From: Orbicella franksi
Lineage: Eukaryota
NCBI GenBank assembly: GCA_964199315.1
Contig: OZ116707.1
Span: 26,040,001-26,104,000 of the forward strand
DNA length: 64,000 bases
Direction: 5' to 3'
Shown: positions 23,081-38,599 of the stretch, piece after piece
How the letters are laid out: each line of letters opens with the position of its first letter
How positions within the stretch are numbered: position 1 is the first letter of the stretch
The notes under the pieces: model-generated
The model's database searches: none
The model's input: the letters and a program-made list of their open reading frames with translations, nothing else
Told to the model about the DNA's origin: nothing
Made by a program: the position numbers and the translations under genes

Positions 23081-24072
23081 CTGAAACGGCCTAGCTTTTT
23101 ACTCAGTGAGCTATTCATTTCAGGACGAGCTAAATGAGCTAAGTCTACAAAACACATGCACATACGTTTGTACTGAATAAGCAAAGTTTTTACTCAATGC
23201 CCAATTCCCTCTATGAGATGTACATGCAGGGAAACATGTTAATTGTATTCATCAAAAATAACAATGAGTCCAATCCAAGATAGCACACAGTGTGGACTAT
23301 AGGCTTGCCTTCTGAAATCTAGTACCTCTCGTCTCGGGACTTACAATCGAATAATAGCAACAGCACCAATTCGAACGTTGCTCTGTTGGATTGGATATTT
23401 TTTCATCCATGAACGCAACTGCCATGATTCCCTACCGGCTCGTCCCAGTCATAGAGGGAATTGACCATTGAGGCGTCCTAAATTCTAATATGGTCAATTC
23501 TAATATGCTTTTCATGCATGTTTTTTTTGTTGTTGTTGTTGTTTTGTTTTGTTTTGTTTTTTTTCACAACTCGATGTTTTAAACATTGATGGTAAATCAG
23601 TAGATCAATATCCGTTAAAAGCTTCTCTGTAATTAAAAAACACTAAGAAACTCAGTGTCAGTCGACTGACAGATGTTAATACTGAAACAGTCGAAGTGTT
23701 TCACATTTCTAAGAATTATTTCCTATCTTCGAAATCTGAAGCCAAGCGGGCGTGGATTAATTTACTTGCCTAGATCATCATGGCTGCATACTTTTCTCTT
23801 TCGAGGTAGGGATTTTCTTGGAAATTGACCGTATTTTTTTCGGCGCCGAGAAAACGTAGGATTTCAAGGCGTTTATTAAGAACACAGCTTTATACACCCG
23901 ATGACATTTGAACCCGGCAATTATTCGGGCTCTGGCGTTTAATCAAGGAAAGCCGCTTGTTTAATTTAAACATGGACAAAAACAAACAAGCAAAAAAAGG
24001 GTCTAAAACCATTGTAGGATTGTGTGACAGCAGAAATAACTGTTTGTGTATCTATTGCAGATAGACATAATC

Positions 24073-25023
24073 ATGGAAACGAATAACACATCATCAGCAA
24101 TACTCAGACCAACAGGGTCCATACTTCATATTAGCAAAGAGGAAGGATATTTCTGGTGTTCTCTGTTTATTCTTGAGGCGATCATCATCGTTGTACTCAA
24201 CATGTTTACGATTATCGTCTTTACCAAGGACCGCCATTTGCGCAAGCGCAGTACATATCTCCTAATCAACCTATCAGCGGCTGATGTCGGTGTGGGAGGA
24301 CTTGTTATACCAACTGCTGTTTTTCGTCGAGGGAACACTTATGGACTTTGGAATGTTGAGATGACTCATGCGTGGTTCATTTCCACATATGGAGTTGACA
24401 CACTGTTTTTTGGGTGTTCTCTTGCGTTTTTGGTCTCAATTTCAGTTGAGAGACTGTACGCTACAAGAAGTCCAATGAGGCATCGGTCTATGACAGGACT
24501 GACATACAAAATTTGGATTTCTTGCGTATGGGTCGCGTCTTTCATTTGCACAAGTGTCATAGTTTTATTCTTATTCTATGACATAATCGGGTTGCAGATT
24601 TGGTACATCGTGGCTTCATGCGTTTTTGTTTCGCTTTTAATTTTAACCTTTAGTTACTTCGCGATATTTGTTACAGTTCGATGCAGTGAACAACCCCAGC
24701 ACTCTCATCGCGGCCAGGCAAGGAAGGAACGAAGGCTTACTATGACACTGTTCATTGTCACGCTTGTCTCCTTGTCAGTGTGGATTCCGTACGTGCTTTT
24801 CACATTCCTAGAGTCTCATCTGTCACAGACATTTTCTGAAGAAACAGTTTTAAGAGCGCGAGGTGTTTCTGAGGCCTTGTTCTTTGCTAACTCCTTTGTA
24901 AATCCGATACTGTACACGATCAGGATGCCTCAGTTTGGAAAAGCGAGTATTAACTTGATTACCTGTGCTGGAAACGCTAGAGGTGGACGGACAACCTCAT
25001 TGTCGTCAGACACTGTACTCTGA
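24073..25023 (+). CDS. Class A GPCR, paralog 3 (316 aa), ends in DTVL
   Basis: Same 7TM motifs. Acceptor TATTGCAG ends at 24060 and the ATG at 24073 (METNNTS) is homologous to MATNNTS of paralogs 1 and 2. Confidence 0.94.
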   Translation: METNNTSSAILRPTGSILHISKEEGYFWCSLFILEAIIIVVLNMFTIIVFTKDRHLRKRSTYLLINLSAADVGVGGLVIPTAVFRRGNTYGLWNVEMTHAWFISTYGVDTLFFGCSLAFLVSISVERLYATRSPMRHRSMTGLTYKIWISCVWVASFICTSVIVLFLFYDIIGLQIWYIVASCVFVSLLILTFSYFAIFVTVRCSEQPQHSHRGQARKERRLTMTLFIVTLVSLSVWIPYVLFTFLESHLSQTFSEETVLRARGVSEALFFANSFVNPILYTIRMPQFGKASINLITCAGNARGGRTTSLSSDTVL

Positions 25024-27998: not shown

Positions 27999-28976
27999 AT
28001 GTCGCTAGACGCCGTGAACAAGACCATGAATGGAACACAGCCATGGAGCTGCAAACAAATATATGACGCTGCAGCAACAAAGATCGGATTAACCTTTGTT
28101 TACTGCTTAATCTTTGTTGTTTCGTTGGCCGGAAACACTTTCATCGCAATGGTTGTCTTCAAGACGAACACCATGAGAAAGCCCATCAACGTTTTAATCG
28201 CAAACATGGCCATGTCCGATTTGTTGTTTCCGATTTGCCTGTTCCCGCGAATTGTAACGCGTTTGCACGTCGACTCCTGGTTAGTCAGTGGTCGTCTTGG
28301 CGAGGCCTTGTGTAAGCTGCTTACATTCTTAACCGATGTCTCCGGTGCTGTGTCAATTCAGAGCCTGGTCCTTATCGCAGTGGATCGATTTCAAGCTGTG
28401 GTTTTTCCTCTCCGTTCTCCTCTGATCAGTTCAAAGCGGTGCCCGTTCTTCATTCTCGCCACGTGGATGGTTGGGATAGCTACCTCCACCGCATATCTTT
28501 TTGCCTACAAGCTTGTGAAGAATCAGGGTCGGTTGGTTTGTGAGCTACGGTGGAAAGAAGCTTTTGGAGAGTCCTCGTCGTTTGCAAATTACATTTTACC
28601 AATGACTTTTGTATTCTTTTACATCCCGTTACTAGTGATAGCCATACTCTATCGCCTCATCTACTTAAAACTCAAAACACAGGTGATTCCAGGCGAGCAA
28701 ACGGCCATTGCTATACAACAACGACTGACAAGGGAAAGAAATGTGCTCAAGATAGCCATTGCTATTGTGTTAGGGTTTGCATTATGCTGGTTGCCCTACA
28801 GTTTCGCTTCCACTGTGCTCTTTGTATTTGGTGGCACACAGCAGTGTGGTTTCGTCTACTTCACTTTTGTTGCCGCAGTTATTGCTCACTCAAATTGTGC
28901 TATAAATCCTTCCATCTGCTTTATTTTCAGTCAAAATTATCGACAAGGTCTCAAGAATTTTTTAACAAGGTCTTGA
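27999..28976 (+). CDS. Intronless class A GPCR, neuropeptide-receptor-like (tachykinin/NPFF/QRFP/RYamide-type), 325 aa
   Basis: GN (TM1), MAMSD (TM2), C3.25 (ALCKL), DRF, TM4 Trp, ECL2 Cys (LVCEL), CWLP, NPSIC and helix 8 (FSQNYRQGL); N-terminal NKT and NGT sequons. Confidence 0.93.
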   Translation: MSLDAVNKTMNGTQPWSCKQIYDAAATKIGLTFVYCLIFVVSLAGNTFIAMVVFKTNTMRKPINVLIANMAMSDLLFPICLFPRIVTRLHVDSWLVSGRLGEALCKLLTFLTDVSGAVSIQSLVLIAVDRFQAVVFPLRSPLISSKRCPFFILATWMVGIATSTAYLFAYKLVKNQGRLVCELRWKEAFGESSSFANYILPMTFVFFYIPLLVIAILYRLIYLKLKTQVIPGEQTAIAIQQRLTRERNVLKIAIAIVLGFALCWLPYSFASTVLFVFGGTQQCGFVYFTFVAAVIAHSNCAINPSICFIFSQNYRQGLKNFLTRS

Positions 28977-31520: not shown

Positions 31521-33960
31521 TCACTGTAATAGTCTACAAAAGTGTACGAGAAAACTTTACCGCTGAGCTGGAAATCTTCAATGAGTACATTTCACAAATA
31601 ATATCTGAACTAATATTTAACACAAGCTTTAATTTGACTTGCTGACAAATTTAAAATCGGTTGAACAGTTTCGAATTTTCTGTCAATCCGTAATGATTAC
31701 TGTATCACCAATCAAAGAAACACCAATTGATCATGATATACCGTTAAGTTAAGTCAAAGATCTAGATTTATCTGAACAACATCCAAATGTACAGCTGTAC
31801 CGGTCTACGAGCTATGTGAATATGCCTAAAAAAATTATCATGTTCAATGGTGTATTGCGGAATGTTTAATGATCTCATTCGTCACAGAGAGTTGCCTTGG
31901 GCACAAAAGCAGTACGTTATGTTTAATATTTACCAAGACATAGGCATCGTTCTTCACTCTTCCTTGCTTTTTCACTATCTTCCTTTGTACGGTCTTGTAT
32001 ATCGTTGACATTCGTCAGTCTTAGAAACTATGGACTATATAATCTATCGATATATTGCTAAACCACAGAGCAGTTTTATAAGACCCGATGCGGATCATTA
32101 AGTTCTTGCCTAAGGGGACTCGCTGCTCCCTGCTAAACAACACAGTCAGATTGTGCGGGTTTTTGGTTGACTGTCAACCCATGGAACAATCTTTGACATT
32201 CTCGCACGAAGATCATTTATCACGTGTTAATCACAATGCTCTTAGCCAATCATATTGCGTTGTTTCCTATCTTGACAGCGAGTCTCTCAATAACATCCTC
32301 TTTAAATCAATAAAGGATATTAAATAAATCTGCGAGCTTTTTACTTTCCTCAAGCATACAGATGGTTCCTTGATCAACATCCATCACGCCGAGGAAGTCT
32401 TGAACATATGTCTTGACATACTTGAACGCGATCAGGTAAGACATGGGAGAATACACTCTCTCTGTTAATCATTAATCTATTTCCATGCTGTTATTGGGGT
32501 AAAGTTTAGAAGAGTTAAGCTAACCTGGGCATGCATGGCGAAGGCTTGGCTGGTTCTTTTAAATCACCACGTTATGGTCCGTGATCATGGCACTATATTT
32601 GTCAATCGCCAATAATCGCAGGGAATTCCTTTTCCCCAAGTTTTTATGTTCATTTAGCATTCGAAAGCGACCCTGAAGAGAAGGGAAGTTCTCAACTTAA
32701 ACTTATTTTAGAAAACCGAGAGAAAGTTTTTCAAACTTTGTGACTTGAATAACTCAATGTCTGCATACGCACAAGTTTTGCATAATAAATTCACTCTTTA
32801 GCATACGAAGCTAGGAGATGGATCAAGAAGGCATATGATTTAAACCTACAGTAACCGCTTTGTTTCACACGGTGAAGAATCAGTGAAGTTTGTGGAAGAA
32901 GCATTTGATATCAGTCACAACGTATTCCGAAATGCGCACAGACTGTTTTCCAGAAATATTTAATCAACTCTGTGACTACGGAAGACAAACGTTATGGATT
33001 TTAGACGGCTACGTCACGCTACGATGAATACTTTGATCAGTTTAGTACAAGCGAAACCTCAAAATTAAAGATGAGACGGTTTACAGATCGAATTCGAAGC
33101 ATAGATACTAAGCAATGAATACTGAACCGTTTGTAACCTTAATACTGTACAGAAAACCCATTTGTGTAGCCGTTCATATACTGATAGCTGTTAAGGAATA
33201 TTTTGTTTGTGTGTTATTTTTTTAAATTAACCTTGGGAAAAGGTTAATGATGCGTTATGGCTTTTTCATTTGCAAGTTTGATTTTTCCAATTATTTATGG
33301 GTAAGCATATTGAAAGATCTGAAAAACATTGTTTCGTTAGAGCTGTCAATCTCAGTATTGAAATGCCATTATATTTCATCTGTCAAGGACTGATCCCATG
33401 ATTATTGTAGTAGAAGTAAGAATCAGATCAAACGTTCAGGTGTTGGTAATTGAGATTTATTTATAACATGGTTATAGTTCAGGAAAGCGTACCCTATTGA
33501 GGCTGACCTCACTTGTTTTTCAATTTCTCGCCCACTTGCTGCTCACTCTGGATTCCCTAACAGGGCCTTCGATAGTAACAGGCAAATCGAGGCACTTGCC
33601 TCAGTCATTTGGTTTTGTTTTGGTTGTTTAAATCGGTAAATTACATGAAAATAATAACATGGTTTGTCAACATTTGCAACTGAAAACATGAATAATCAGC
33701 TATGAGATAATTTGTGCATTATTAATTTAATTTACGTTTCGTTCTAATATAAAGTATGAAGCCAAAACGCTACTCCAGAAATGCGTTTTTGAGATGTTTC
33801 ATCTACATTTAAGTTTTAATGTTGTCTAGATGTTGTAAAGATGGCCCTTTTCCCCCAGAGAATAATACTTTAAGATAAAACAAACTTTCAGAGGAAAAAA
33901 TCTCCGTCAGTTTCAGACGAAATCAGGAACAGCTCAGAGAGCATCAGACGGACACGTGGA

Positions 33961-36614
33961 ATGGAGCTGATGACAGTATTACGATTGGTAAGTGACGCCG
34001 GTGGTGATAAAATTAGCCAGCTATATCAGGTGAAACTCGTTTTCCGCTGTGAGTTGTGTCAATTCAAGTCTTTTTACACCTCTTTTAACGAGGTATATCT
34101 AGAAGCCATGAGTTTCAACCGGGAGAGCATGAAGGGTATTTTCAAAGTTATCCCTTTCAAGTTAGTTCCAAGGCTGCCAATTTGGAAGATGAGACTCATG
34201 GACGGCTATTAGTGGTTTAAAGTCAATTCTTATCGAAAGGAAACATATCTAGCAACAATAATTTCATTCAAGTGGCAATGAAGGGTAAGAGAGAGAATTA
34301 AGGGCCGAGACAGTTGAGCCATCTCATGTAGGCCAGGTAACCAGTTCCCCGCAGATGTTACCACGCGCGTTACGTGGATGTTTCCATGAAGGATGAAAAT
34401 GCATTTCAAGCCGCTTACGTTGTCCACGCGAGAAAATTCGTGTGTCAGGATTGTCTATTTAATTCTATATCCTTCGAGAATTCCAAAACCGGGAGCGATC
34501 TAATCTAAACCTAGAAGATTACCTTGAAAATAAGGCTATATGCAGGAACGACTCCCTGAAACTTCACCTCTCTTGTTTCAGTACATTGACATTCCTTACT
34601 GCGTTCTCACTGACCGACTGACCGTCTGTCGGAGTGGCTGGCTGACTGACTGGCTGACTGACTGGCTGACTGACTGGCTGAGTGACTAACTGACTGACTG
34701 ACTGACTGACGGTCTAACCGATTGACTAACTGACTGACTCTGTCATTGGCTGATCGACGGACCCACGGACCCACGGAACGACCGACCGACTGACTGACTG
34801 ACTGACCTATTGACCAGCTGTTTGGCAGGCTGGCTGGCTGTCTAACGTAGCGCTCCTTCACATTTCAGCTCGCTTTCTCCGCTGTAGTTACTTTAACAAC
34901 TGCCAGGCCAAGAGTTCATTGGAATCCAGAATATGGCTATGATGTGGATTACAAAAGATACAAGGAGAGAGGTAAAGAGCAGGCCTCAAAATCAAAACCG
35001 TACTAATCACTCTGGCCAATCAATCAGCAAACGTGTATACTTTCGACACACAAGACTAAACCGCTTTCATCGAGAGGACCTCGTGACTAATGGTAGAAGA
35101 AATTGAACTAACTTTGTCTAAAAATGGTCTCGTTATCCTCGTTTAAATTACAAATCGGTCACCTACAGTATGGTCTTAACTGTTAATTATAGACCATGGT
35201 CAAACTAAAGTGGAACCATGAGCGGCGGGCAAGACGTTTAACTGCAAAGTTTTGGACATCTTACGACGCCATTTCTATGCTTTATAGACTGTAGACCAGG
35301 AGAAAATATGGTCCATTAGCTTTTTTTATGGTAACACTGAAAATTTACTGGCAAATTAGAAGGGTAATCAATGTGAAAACGAGTGCGTGTGACAGTTAAA
35401 AAGATCACTACTGTACTTGAAGCAGACAAGTTCCTCGAAAATTTCTATCCACGACTCTGCGGTTTAAGTCTATTAGAAGGACCAAGACAATTTCTCAAAA
35501 TTAGCTCCAAATTTTTTTTTAAACTTTGCCAAAAGTTGCGTCTTATCATGCTTATTAAAATGTGATAAAATAGAAAAAAAAATCACCGTGCCGTTTTTGA
35601 ATTTTAAGCCTCTAAAGCTGTAATTGAGGGTGTTTTTAGCAGGTCATACTGTTGCTATGGTAACCTATTGTGTCACGAAAATGATAAAAACGTGTTCAAC
35701 AATGATTGGTCAGTTTTTTTGATACCATGATTGTAGCATCAAGTGATAAAGAGTGGTTGTAGCGACCCGCCAAAATCTAAGTGCTGGAAAGTGTTTTACG
35801 CCACCTTAATTTGTTGTTGCTTTCGATAGACAAACTTTATAAGTCAGACGGAGAGCAAGGTCATGACGATAGCAGCATTACAGGCCAAACAAACCGCGCA
35901 TTGTACCAGACGGATAACAAATGGGACGACAATTATAGGCTACTAGATGAATTAGGTAATCTTAAAGTTACGACTTGTTTATTTCGCGTCTCTCTTTTGT
36001 TCGTTCTTTTCATGTTACCATTTTCCCCGCTAGATAAACTCTATACGTCAGACCGTGAACAAGTTTTTGATGACAGAAACATCAGAGACCAAGCAAACCG
36101 GGCATTGTACCAGACAGAGGACGAGTGGAACGATATTGAGAGTGTGCTCGATGAGTTAGGTAATATGACCTTTTCTAATTGTATTAAGACAACGACTGAA
36201 AAGACGTGTCGTGGAATATTTATCTTTAGAATTATCGCTGCTTAGAGAGTTGACTGGAATCAATCTTAATAACTGTTGTTTTTTACTTTGCTCTTTGTTC
36301 TGGTAATTACAGAAGCAGCACTAAGGAGTGATGAAACTACGGAGTCACCAGCCACTGGTGAACCTTATGGATCGCCTGTAATGGACAAACCGTCTGAGTC
36401 ATCTGAATCACCTACCACTGAAGAATCTTCTGGATCAGGTGAATCACGTGCACCTGCCACTGAACAGCCTTCTGGATCAGCTGAATCACCTACGACTGAA
36501 GAACCTTCTAGATCAGCTAAATCACCTTCTACTGAAGAGCCTCCTGGATCAGCTGAATTACCAACTATTGAGGAATCGTCTGGATCAGCTGAATCACGAG
36601 CCACTGAGGAATAA
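33961..36614 (+). CDS. Uncharacterised secreted acidic repeat protein, 5 coding exons, 227 aa
   Basis: Exons 33961-33987, 34869-34971, 35830-35955, 36034-36159, 36313-36614; all introns GT-AG, phases 0,1,1,1, open frame throughout. The N-terminus MELMTVLRLLAFSAVVTLTTA looks like a signal peptide. Exons 3 and 4 are homologous 126-nt duplicates and the tail has 12-aa repeats. Confidence 0.8.
34608..34845. repeat. Degenerate (CTGA/CTGG/CCGA)n tetranucleotide microsatellite in intron 1 of the secreted-protein gene
   Basis: Read directly from the sequence. Confidence 0.95.
36390..36610 (+). repeat. Coding 36-bp tandem repeat (SGSAESPTTEEP-like), about 5-6 units
   Basis: TCTGGATCAGCTGAATCACCTACGACTGAAGAACCT and variants. 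Confidence 0.9.
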
Positions 36615-36839
36615 TTTCACCATCGCAGATAAAAGTTGTTTCAATATCTACATTATTCCCGATATCTGTGATAAATTAAAATTGTAGTTTCGTGTTTTTA
36701 GTCGTGCATCGATCGTTTTGTAGATGGAAGTGGGAACTAAACAGAATTATTTTTAGTGGGTGACAGTAGCCAAATCAGACAATACTTTATTACCTACCTC
36801 CCTCAAAGTCGGTGTTATCAAGTTCCTCTGGTTAGAAGT

Positions 36840-36950
36840 TCCGTTTTCGGTGGACAATTTCTCCAGATTATATTAGTGTGGAGGTTAGGCCTAACCGTAG
36901 AAATAAAGCCACGTTCTCGAATTTCTCCGGCGTAGTGTGGGCAGGAATTA
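36840..36950. mobile_element. Partial (right-end) copy of the MITE family at 43168-43547
   Basis: TTAGTGTGGAGGTTAGGCCTAACCGTAGAAATAAAG...TTTCTCCGGCGTAGTGTGG matches 43465-43540. Confidence 0.7.
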
Positions 36951-38599
36951 AAATGCTTCGTTAAACTTCCCAACTGAAATGAAGTTTTCTATTGGATGGA
37001 AAGATACTACATGAGCCGCCTGGAACTGTATAACTCTCTAGGGCAAGCAAAACTCACTGACTCCCTCGAGCAACAGCAGTGCTAACTTGCACATGATCAG
37101 GTTGTGTGCCTTGAAAACATGGCACGTGTACTCAAAAGCAAAGGTTTATTTTTTATTTTGTTCTTATTCGGTTATTCGGAAGTCAACTAGTTACACGTTC
37201 ACCAAAAATACTTGCGTACTCAAAGAAAGATCTGTCAGTAATTCTAAACCTCAAAGCGTTGTTGAGCTGTCTTGAAAGTTTCAGTAATAAATTCATATCG
37301 GTTTCAGCGGTAGACACATTTTATTTCGGACAATAGTAGGCAACAGAGTGTTTATTATCAGTTGGGATCTAACAAAACGCTAACTGTCGCCACGGGAAAC
37401 AGTGAGTTTTGTTTCGTTTCTCTACCACGGAGGGTGTTGGGGAACAAATTTGTATTACGGGGTGGCCATTGATTGCGGTCCCTTTTTGGGTCAAGAGGGC
37501 TGGATATTAGCCAAGTTCTTTGCTCGTTGAGGCCAGGAAATCGCACAAGCTTCGTCGTAGAGAACATCGCAAGGACGCAACAAGCAACTTTTTTCTGTCT
37601 TATGTAATTTACAACAAGTCAATAAACTGTTTAGAAACAACAAAAGAAAATAATTAGTAACTTAACTACAACCCCACAAATTTTAGCGTAACTTCAGCAC
37701 TATTCATAAATTTTCTTTTCATGAAGAAGTTCTTCTCATTCTCGATTAACCCGATAACTGAATATTTCTTCTTCATGCAGAAAATAGAAAGACAACATGC
37801 AAACGCTGCCTAAGTACACTTGTCCACTTTGATGTAAAAAAGACTCCAAACCAGTCTTTATCCATGGCATGCATTGGGTGAAGCATTAATTCAACATACA
37901 AACTACTCCTGACCTTATCAGTGCTTCTAGAGGTAAAAAATGTAATATCAGTTCAATAGCCAATGGCATTGTTATTGTATAGGAACATTAATTGCTTAAA
38001 GCTCAAAAAGTTAAACAGGAAATAGATGTTCATCTGCTCCATTCGAGGGTGATCATACAATCGCATATTGTGTCCACATTTCTTCCTTCCTCCAAGTTAC
38101 TGATAACAACCGACTAGCCCTCGAAAAACCCGAATCAAGTGTTTATTAATTCTTTTAGAATTTTGACTGCAGAAAACAAAAAAACAAAAAACAAAAAACA
38201 GAAACGACAGCCTGCAAACCCAGCTTGAAATACAGACACAGACCTCGGGGGGTCCATATAAGGACATATGAAGTCAGAAGCGCTGAGGCAGTACAGGCCC
38301 GGTCAGAAATCAACCACCCTATTCCGACACTCCATCCAGACTCATGCTTCCGGTGGATTGTCGCATGGTACTCATGATACCTGCGTGCTGTGTCCAACAG
38401 GATAGGTTTCCAACTTGCGAGCACGGAATGACTAGTCGACCTCTCGACTGCTACCACCGCTCTGGACGTGAAAGTAAAACAAGCACTAAGAGGAGCGCAC
38501 GAAACTCTCCACCCAGCTTTATAGGAATGCGTGATTGCCTTCTGCGATCATTCCGATTTCAAAATGGACGTTTTATTAGCTTGTTCTAGCACTGATCTC

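Follow-up and report, generated by a model that had tools for sequence, protein, structure and literature searches.

Does a stretch of coral DNA hold a real gene that no annotated protein matches, and if so, what might its product do? The stretch in question (hereafter the window) comprises 64,000 nts of the stony coral Orbicella franksi (assembly GCA_964199315.1, contig OZ116707.1, positions 26,040,001 to 26,104,000 of the forward strand), and positions given below are counted from its first letter. From the sequence alone, an original prediction had proposed that positions 33961 to 36614 encode an orphan protein of 227 amino acids, secreted, cysteine-free, acidic and built by exon duplication. 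The follow-up analysis reported here establishes that this five-exon gene is real, transcribed and spliced exactly at the predicted sites.

Gene structure and expression

Scripted splicing of the five exons on the + strand yields a coding sequence of 684 nts that remains in frame throughout and encodes 227 amino acids followed by a stop codon, and the four introns that interrupt it all have GT..AG ends. Four RNA runs were examined over positions 33800-36800, including X1 (study P1) and X5 (study P2). RNA junctions had been named from the outset as the check on the four introns, and all of them (33987/34869, 34971/35830, 35955/36034 and 36159/36313) were found, exact to the nucleotide, in RNA contigs from X1 and X5, i.e., in two different studies, at k-mer depths of 55 and 37, respectively. 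Altogether, 14 RNA runs, drawn from about seven studies of O. franksi and close relatives, contain the sequence, and the 1.8-kb transcript is present in X11, a single-cell library of O. franksi. In addition, the complete spliced coding sequence occurs in a Joint Genome Institute (JGI) transcript contig of a close relative (L015), with 97% amino-acid identity.

The first exon (33911-33987) contains 50 nts of 5′ untranslated region (UTR; 33911-33960), the ATG at 33961 and nine codons (MELMTVLRL), and is followed by a phase-0 intron. Exon 2 (34869-34971), both junctions of which are seen in X1 and X5, encodes the remainder of the signal-like peptide (LAFSAVVTLTTA) and then a Tyr/acidic and basic stretch (RPRVHWNPEYGYDVDYKRYKER), ends in phase 1 and is kept in the orthologous loci L003, L004, L009, L014 and L018. 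Exons 3 (35830-35955) and 4 (36034-36159) are each 126 nts long, begin and end in phase 1 and encode 42-residue modules 1 and 2, exon 4 being an old tandem duplicate of exon 3. The coding part of exon 5 (36313-36614) completes the second predicted helix and runs through an acidic Ser/Thr/Pro/Glu tail to the stop codon. This tail derives from 5.7 copies of a 36-nt (12-residue) tandem repeat (36388-36597) with a consensus peptide of about EPSGSAESPTTE. The intron phases of the gene are thus 0,1,1,1. All exons lie on the + strand.

The transcript begins further upstream, with a non-coding 5′UTR exon at about 32313-32435 (+ strand, donor GT at 32436) that is seen in both the X1 and X5 contigs. The X1 contig (1761 nts) reaches 119 nts upstream of position 33907, and this extra sequence matches 32313-32431, while the loose end of the X5 contig matches 32402-32431 exactly. 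The leader splice joins the donor cag/gtaaga at 32435/32436 to the acceptor at 33910/33911. Once the leader is spliced, the ATG at 33961 has an in-frame stop codon ahead of it and stands in the context GGAATGG. The 3′UTR covers at least 36615-37245, the point up to which L015 is collinear, and the length of the X1 contig (1208 nts downstream of 36311) implies an end at about 37518. Two minimal upstream open reading frames (ORFs) occur in the 5′UTR exon, MVP-stop (32361-32372) and MS-stop (32407-32415), and the 1475-nt leader intron is kept unspliced in L015.

The original prediction had pointed out that symmetric exons are readily duplicated or skipped. Duplication is what the locus records, but no exon-skipped or intron-3-retaining RNA was seen among the examined RNA contigs of O. 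franksi and of the L009 type.

Predicted protein architecture

The precursor contains no cysteine, has an isoelectric point (pI) of 4.30 and carries 51 Asp or Glu among its 227 residues, in line with the expectation of an acidic, Cys-free product. As also anticipated, its signal-like peptide is divided over exons 1 and 2 (MELMTVLRL / LAFSAVVTLTTA). By hydropathy and inspection, the N-terminus consists of Arg8, a hydrophobic core of about 10-13 residues and then T-T-A/R-P, with small residues at -3 and -1, a layout that is conserved in the orthologs despite sequence variation. Judged by its length, the hydrophobic core could not cross a membrane, and the whole suggests a cleavable signal peptide of roughly 21 residues.

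The head of the putative mature protein (residues 22-43) is basic (pI 9.3) and includes the Tyr/acidic cluster EYGYDVDY, which we take to resemble tyrosine-sulfation sites. The Lys-Arg pair that follows the Tyr/acidic stretch is kept in five of six lineages, L014 reading YEGYKEK. Further along, residues 59-91 and 101-134 show hydrophobic moments of 0.36-0.38 that peak at 100 degrees, against 0.16 ± 0.08 for shuffled sequences (p ~0.01), and AlphaFold2, with low confidence, draws one helix at about 58-91 and another at 99-134, both of which span an exon boundary, and leaves residues 135-227 as non-helical coil, where its confidence is uniformly low. From these features we infer two amphipathic α-helices of about 33 residues each, linked by acidic loops. 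The modules themselves have a pI of 4.0-4.3.

Among the 100 residues of the tail are 23 Ser, 11 Thr and 13 Pro (47 together) as well as 21 Glu, so that the Ser/Thr/Glu/Pro repeat tail of the original prediction is indeed present. S-x-[DE] sites number seven, against 5.3 ± 1.8 expected from composition, and hence are not enriched. Asp makes up 8.8% of the precursor, 9.7% of the mature protein and 17% of residues 22-127 (106 residues); its longest run is DD, and Glu outnumbers Asp. The tail is predicted to be disordered, probably O-glycosylated and possibly phosphorylated.

Copy number and database searches

Exons 3 and 4 are the sole module matches in the 497-Mb genome, whether the search was made with the single sequence or with a profile. 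The gene is therefore single-copy, and neither query revealed a paralog in that genome. Protein searches comprised a word-indexed search of 5.8 billion proteins and a HMMER profile of the 42-residue module run against 1.84 billion representatives. Together they returned nine clusters, all unnamed and all from JGI, ENA or Logan assemblies of coral metagenomes and transcriptomes, and neither search recovered a named relative.

Most of these clusters are prokaryote-style ORF calls that read through intron 3 (35956-36033), which is only 78 nts long, in frame and free of stop codons in the window, and ORF callers therefore merge both modules into pseudo-proteins. Two such fused products (P0001 and P0002; 142-154 residues) occur in public metagenome protein sets. 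P0001-P0005 were considered as isoforms and rejected, as they are calls made across the in-frame intron as it stands in genomic DNA. The L003 ortholog has a stop codon inside its intron 3. The clusters P0006, P0012 and P0013 correspond to the ORF of a spliced mRNA that another species (L009-L013) shows in five RNA runs.

No annotated cnidarian protein was matched in the libraries searched, and it is for these libraries that the gene can be called unannotated. Their cnidarian content consists of metagenome and transcriptome assemblies, so the true range of the family may exceed the six lineages described below. Pfam gave nothing above threshold for each exon product and for a full-length ortholog (best DUF5126, E 0.11), profile matches in the PDB were confined to designed helical repeats (E 0.43 or worse), and the top scores of a feature-based search of the ESM Atlas, 0.82 and 0.79, are at chance level. 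MEPE, polysialoglycoprotein and UL22A, the nearest named ESM Atlas clusters, were rejected as apparent matches of composition only. A literature search with peptide strings found only irrelevant matches. The absence of a recognisable domain, noted at first sight, thus held in Pfam, PDB and the ESM Atlas, and the sequence comparisons point to no described counterpart for the 42-residue module or for the overall architecture.

Orthologs and origin of the module pair

Orthologous loci were found in at least five further coral lineages (L003 with L019; L004-L008; L009-L013; L014; L018). Cyphastrea sp. is the sole named coral among them, the source of L019 being JGI project Ga0126343, a Cyphastrea sp. 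metagenome (bioRxiv 10.1101/391565). The L003 locus is collinear with positions 31645-36674 of the window at 72-79% DNA identity. Ortholog models built from L003, L014 and the L009 mRNA share the exon structure and splice sites of the O. franksi gene and are likewise Cys-free.

Protein identity between the two modules is 59% and DNA identity about 74%, as expected of the homologous pair of symmetric exons first described. When 14 modules from seven loci are placed in a maximum-likelihood tree, module-1 and module-2 copies fall on opposite sides of a single branch (support 99/96), which bears out their origin by exon duplication and places that duplication before the split of the lineages. Both duplicated exons have the acceptor ...CC(G/T)CTAG/A and the donor TTAG/GTAAT, indicating that the duplicated unit took in the splice signals. 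The module-1 acceptor has since slid in two lineages: CTAG has become CTAA in L009 (about 300-315) and L014 (5926-5937), and an AG 9 nts upstream is used, adding three residues (Pro-Leu-Asn/Ser), as borne out by the L009 mRNA.

Selection and tail instability

Across the first 127 codons, the ratio of non-synonymous to synonymous substitution rates (dN/dS, Nei-Gojobori) is 0.40-0.63, and a Fisher test for an excess of synonymous change is significant for two pairs (p = 0.005 and 0.001) with a third at p = 0.12. All indels in these codons, i.e., in the first four exons, are in frame across the ortholog models. Between the window and L003, the exon lengths are 27/27, 103/103, 126/126, 126/129 and 302/251 nts, every difference being a multiple of three, and the splice sites are conserved, while the introns measure 881/1015, 858/880, 78/104 and 153/605 nts. 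Under neutrality, the first 127 codons would have escaped stop codons with a probability of 0.03-0.07 per lineage. These comparisons show that at least six coral lineages have kept the frame open, with purifying selection that is weak, and that the gene is a fast-evolving rather than a dead one.

The tail is the least constrained portion of the protein. Its dN/dS is 0.49-0.80, and two lineages have it cut short or thrown out of frame while their first 127 codons are intact. In L014 it is shortened and frameshifted, and in L009 it carries an additional insert of 16 residues. In the Cyphastrea-type ortholog, GGA has become TGA ten codons before the ancestral stop (L003 11284-11286, and L019, two independent assemblies of the same species); this early TGA cuts the last repeat, and the old stop context, ...ATEE, can still be read downstream.

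Intron contents and neighbouring genes

Intron 1 contains a microsatellite of about 200 bp, (CTGA)n / ACTGACTG, at 34609-34806. A similar array lies at the corresponding position of the Cyphastrea-type ortholog (L003 8692-8777), and the microsatellite has therefore persisted since the lineages split. Intron 2 holds a solo copy of a dispersed repeat of about 285 bp (35513-35798), of which at least 57 copies, at 83-91% identity, were scored genome-wide from 1622 first-look candidates. Many of these copies form inverted pairs about 70 bp apart, with the look of a miniature inverted-repeat transposable element or foldback element. The RNA depth of up to about 3700 over 35513-35798 derives from other copies of this repeat and not from the orphan gene.

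Upstream of the gene, two intronless ORFs on the + strand encode rhodopsin-type G protein-coupled receptors (GPCRs), at 24046-25023 (7tm_1, E 5e-29) and 27999-28976 (E 2e-43). A 7tm_1 gene also stands beside the orthologs in L003, upstream as in the window, and in L014.

Possible functions of the orphan protein

The best overall explanation, to which we give about an even chance, is that this single-copy gene of a small stony-coral group encodes a secreted glycoprotein of the matrix, mucus or granule type. The 227-residue precursor would enter the secretory pathway by means of its cleavable signal peptide of about 21 residues, leaving an acidic, Cys-free mature protein that consists of a short Tyr-rich acidic/basic head, two helices and the repeat tail. 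The helical pair, which goes back to the early tandem doubling of a symmetric 126-nt exon, could serve as an interaction or self-association module, while the 12-residue Ser/Thr/Pro/Glu repeats would form a spacer or polyanion whose length drifts between species. The protein would then act outside the cell, as a soluble, hydrated and negatively charged component of a matrix, of mucus or of secretory granules. This extracellular role is speculative, and a dedicated part in building the skeleton is conceivable, although nothing examined indicates it.

Several observations weigh against this secreted-glycoprotein interpretation. Secretion and cleavage are deduced from rule-of-thumb features. AlphaFold2 gave a predicted local distance difference test (pLDDT) of 58 and a predicted template-modelling score (pTM) of 0.36 for the modules, and 42 and 0.19 for the full-length protein; because both models are of low confidence, the fold and the self-association are tentative. 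Aligned exons are 85% identical and introns 83%, and differences by codon position range from 15:15:20 to 22:18:27, so that the third position is only mildly favoured, both signs of weak constraint. Lastly, two poly-A raw-read runs with the same species label contained zero exon reads in about 10 million reads each, and expression is thus conditional rather than universal.

Among the alternatives, the protein could belong to the skeletal organic matrix, the idea that the original prediction put first, ahead of a mucus or cnidocyte matrix; it would then be secreted by calicoblasts, bind Ca2+ or CaCO3 through acidic residues and phosphoserines and become occluded in aragonite. The secreted-looking N-terminus, the lack of Cys, the pI of 4.3 and the presence of seven S-x-[DE] sites are consistent with such a role, as is an Asp content (17% of residues 22-127, 9.7% of the mature protein) that lies around the 9% cutoff used for mining coral acidic proteins (PMC6824150), and lineage-specific acidic proteins are known from coral skeletomes (PMC6824150, PMC4890752). 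However, unlike SAARPs and CARPs, the protein has no Asp run longer than DD, it shows no sequence relation to any named protein among the 1.84 billion representatives, its S-x-E sites occur at compositional expectation, and its acidic tail is partly dispensable, given its loss of length or frame in two lineages, which makes this role unlikely. Still less probable is a signalling protein or prohormone, in which cleavage at Lys-Arg would free a Tyr-rich, possibly sulfated peptide, or the helices would themselves be a ligand, with one of the adjoining rhodopsin-type GPCRs as a possible receptor. The cleavage site is indeed conserved in most lineages, and 7tm_1 genes adjoin the gene in the window and at two orthologous loci, but gene neighbourhood by itself is weak evidence, the dibasic site is lost in L014 and is the only one, neither repeated peptide copies nor a G-K-R/G-R-R amidation signal was found, and the bulk of the protein is a long acidic tail of a kind that cnidarian neuropeptide precursors do not typically have.

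The two helices of about 33 residues, with their significant amphipathic periodicity, could also suit the binding of lipids, membranes or microbes, in the manner of an apolipoprotein or of an anionic defence factor, with the tail there for solubility alone. Exchangeable apolipoproteins are built of helical repeats that arose by exon duplication, a likeness that counts for this proposal together with the absence of Cys and the secreted look of the protein. It is nevertheless very unlikely, as no homology was found, the helices number only two and their strong acidity (module pI 4.0-4.3) is unfavourable to membrane binding. The explanation with the lowest standing of all is that of a neutral orphan, i.e., a young ORF that is transcribed yet functionless or decaying. 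The fairly high dN/dS (0.4-0.8), the near-equal conservation of exons and introns, the tail truncated or frameshifted in two lineages and a count of six non-synonymous against three synonymous differences from a close relative would fit it. On the other hand, the first 127 codons have a dN/dS significantly below 1, every indel in the first four exons keeps the frame, exon lengths differ by multiples of three with conserved splice sites in the best-compared ortholog, the frame is open in six lineages against a neutral retention of 3-7% per lineage, and transcript depth is high in several studies.

A bolder version of the secreted-glycoprotein interpretation is that the gene represents an undescribed family of one robust-clade branch (Cyphastrea and relatives), in which a new 42-residue helical module and a polyanionic tail, glycosylated or phosphorylated, perform a lineage-specific extracellular job, in the skeleton or mucus matrix or as a ligand of the adjacent GPCRs. 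We regard this as doubtful. If it were true, the gene would have been missed by predictors and hence would have been invisible so far to studies of skeleton, mucus and single cells. Coral proteomics and single-cell work rely on gene models, and an abundant transcript for a secreted protein that is absent from the searched protein sets escapes them; adding the gene to the reference would permit skeleton, mucus and cell-atlas data to be read again. The gene is one among many taxonomically restricted coral genes, with no tie yet to calcification or symbiosis. It offers a small and clean case of a lineage-restricted, apparently secreted protein in which symmetric-exon duplication, a sliding acceptor and a drifting tail encoded by a minisatellite can be followed.

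Comparison with known protein families

No family membership can be claimed, as the tested defining features of SAARPs/CARPs, gel-forming mucins, SCRiPs and neuropeptide precursors are absent. Cnidarian neuropeptide precursors are recognised by several peptide copies, processing sites and a C-terminal Gly, of which the orphan protein offers a single K-R site. SCRiPs are similarly small and taxonomically restricted coral genes that were first seen in transcript data alone, and their products are secreted, as is predicted for the orphan, but they are defined by conserved cysteines, while the orphan is Cys-free in the window, L003, L009 and L014, and no homology between them was found. The vertebrate secretory calcium-binding phosphoproteins, or SIBLINGs, share with it an acidic and Cys-poor character, S-x-E sites, internal duplication and, as predicted for the orphan, disorder and secretion. 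However, their introns are all in phase 0, in contrast to 0,1,1,1 in the orphan, in which S-x-E is not enriched; there is no homology, and they belong to another phylum. The SIBLING MEPE is a neighbour in the ESM Atlas at a score of 0.80, which is chance level.

The acidic proteins of coral skeletons (SAARPs, CARPs, SAPs and the acidic SOMP/P27) resemble the orphan protein in a low pI, a coral-restricted distribution, partly low-complexity sequence, an Asp content near 9% and, as predicted for the orphan, secretion. Long Asp-rich acidic regions are what defines SAARPs and CARPs (PMC6824150). The orphan has neither such regions nor sequence similarity to these proteins, its acidity stems mostly from Glu within a Ser/Thr/Pro repeat, and its range is far narrower. 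Homology to SAARPs or CARPs in their non-acidic regions was not found either, as the searches gave only unnamed ORFs of the orphan's own family.

In layout, the orphan resembles the mucin-like glycoproteins with Pro/Thr/Ser (PTS) repeats, which combine a signal peptide with short Ser/Thr/Pro/Glu tandem repeats whose copy number is labile between species. The PTS tandem repeat is the sole family-defining feature found in the orphan, its signal peptide being predicted by inspection and hydropathy. Unlike these glycoproteins, the orphan is tiny (about 100 repeat residues), lacks Cys-rich vWD, CK and SEA domains as well as a transmembrane anchor, and has a unique head of two helical modules; with no Cys and no Pfam domain, it shows neither the vWD nor the C-terminal knot domains of gel-forming mucins. 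Fish polysialoglycoprotein, a mucin-like example, comes out as the closest ESM Atlas cluster with a name, its score of 0.79 being no better than chance. In kind, the gene nevertheless resembles the lineage-specific secreted acidic and mucin-like proteins that are common in the secretomes of corals and other invertebrates (PMC6824150, PMC4890752).

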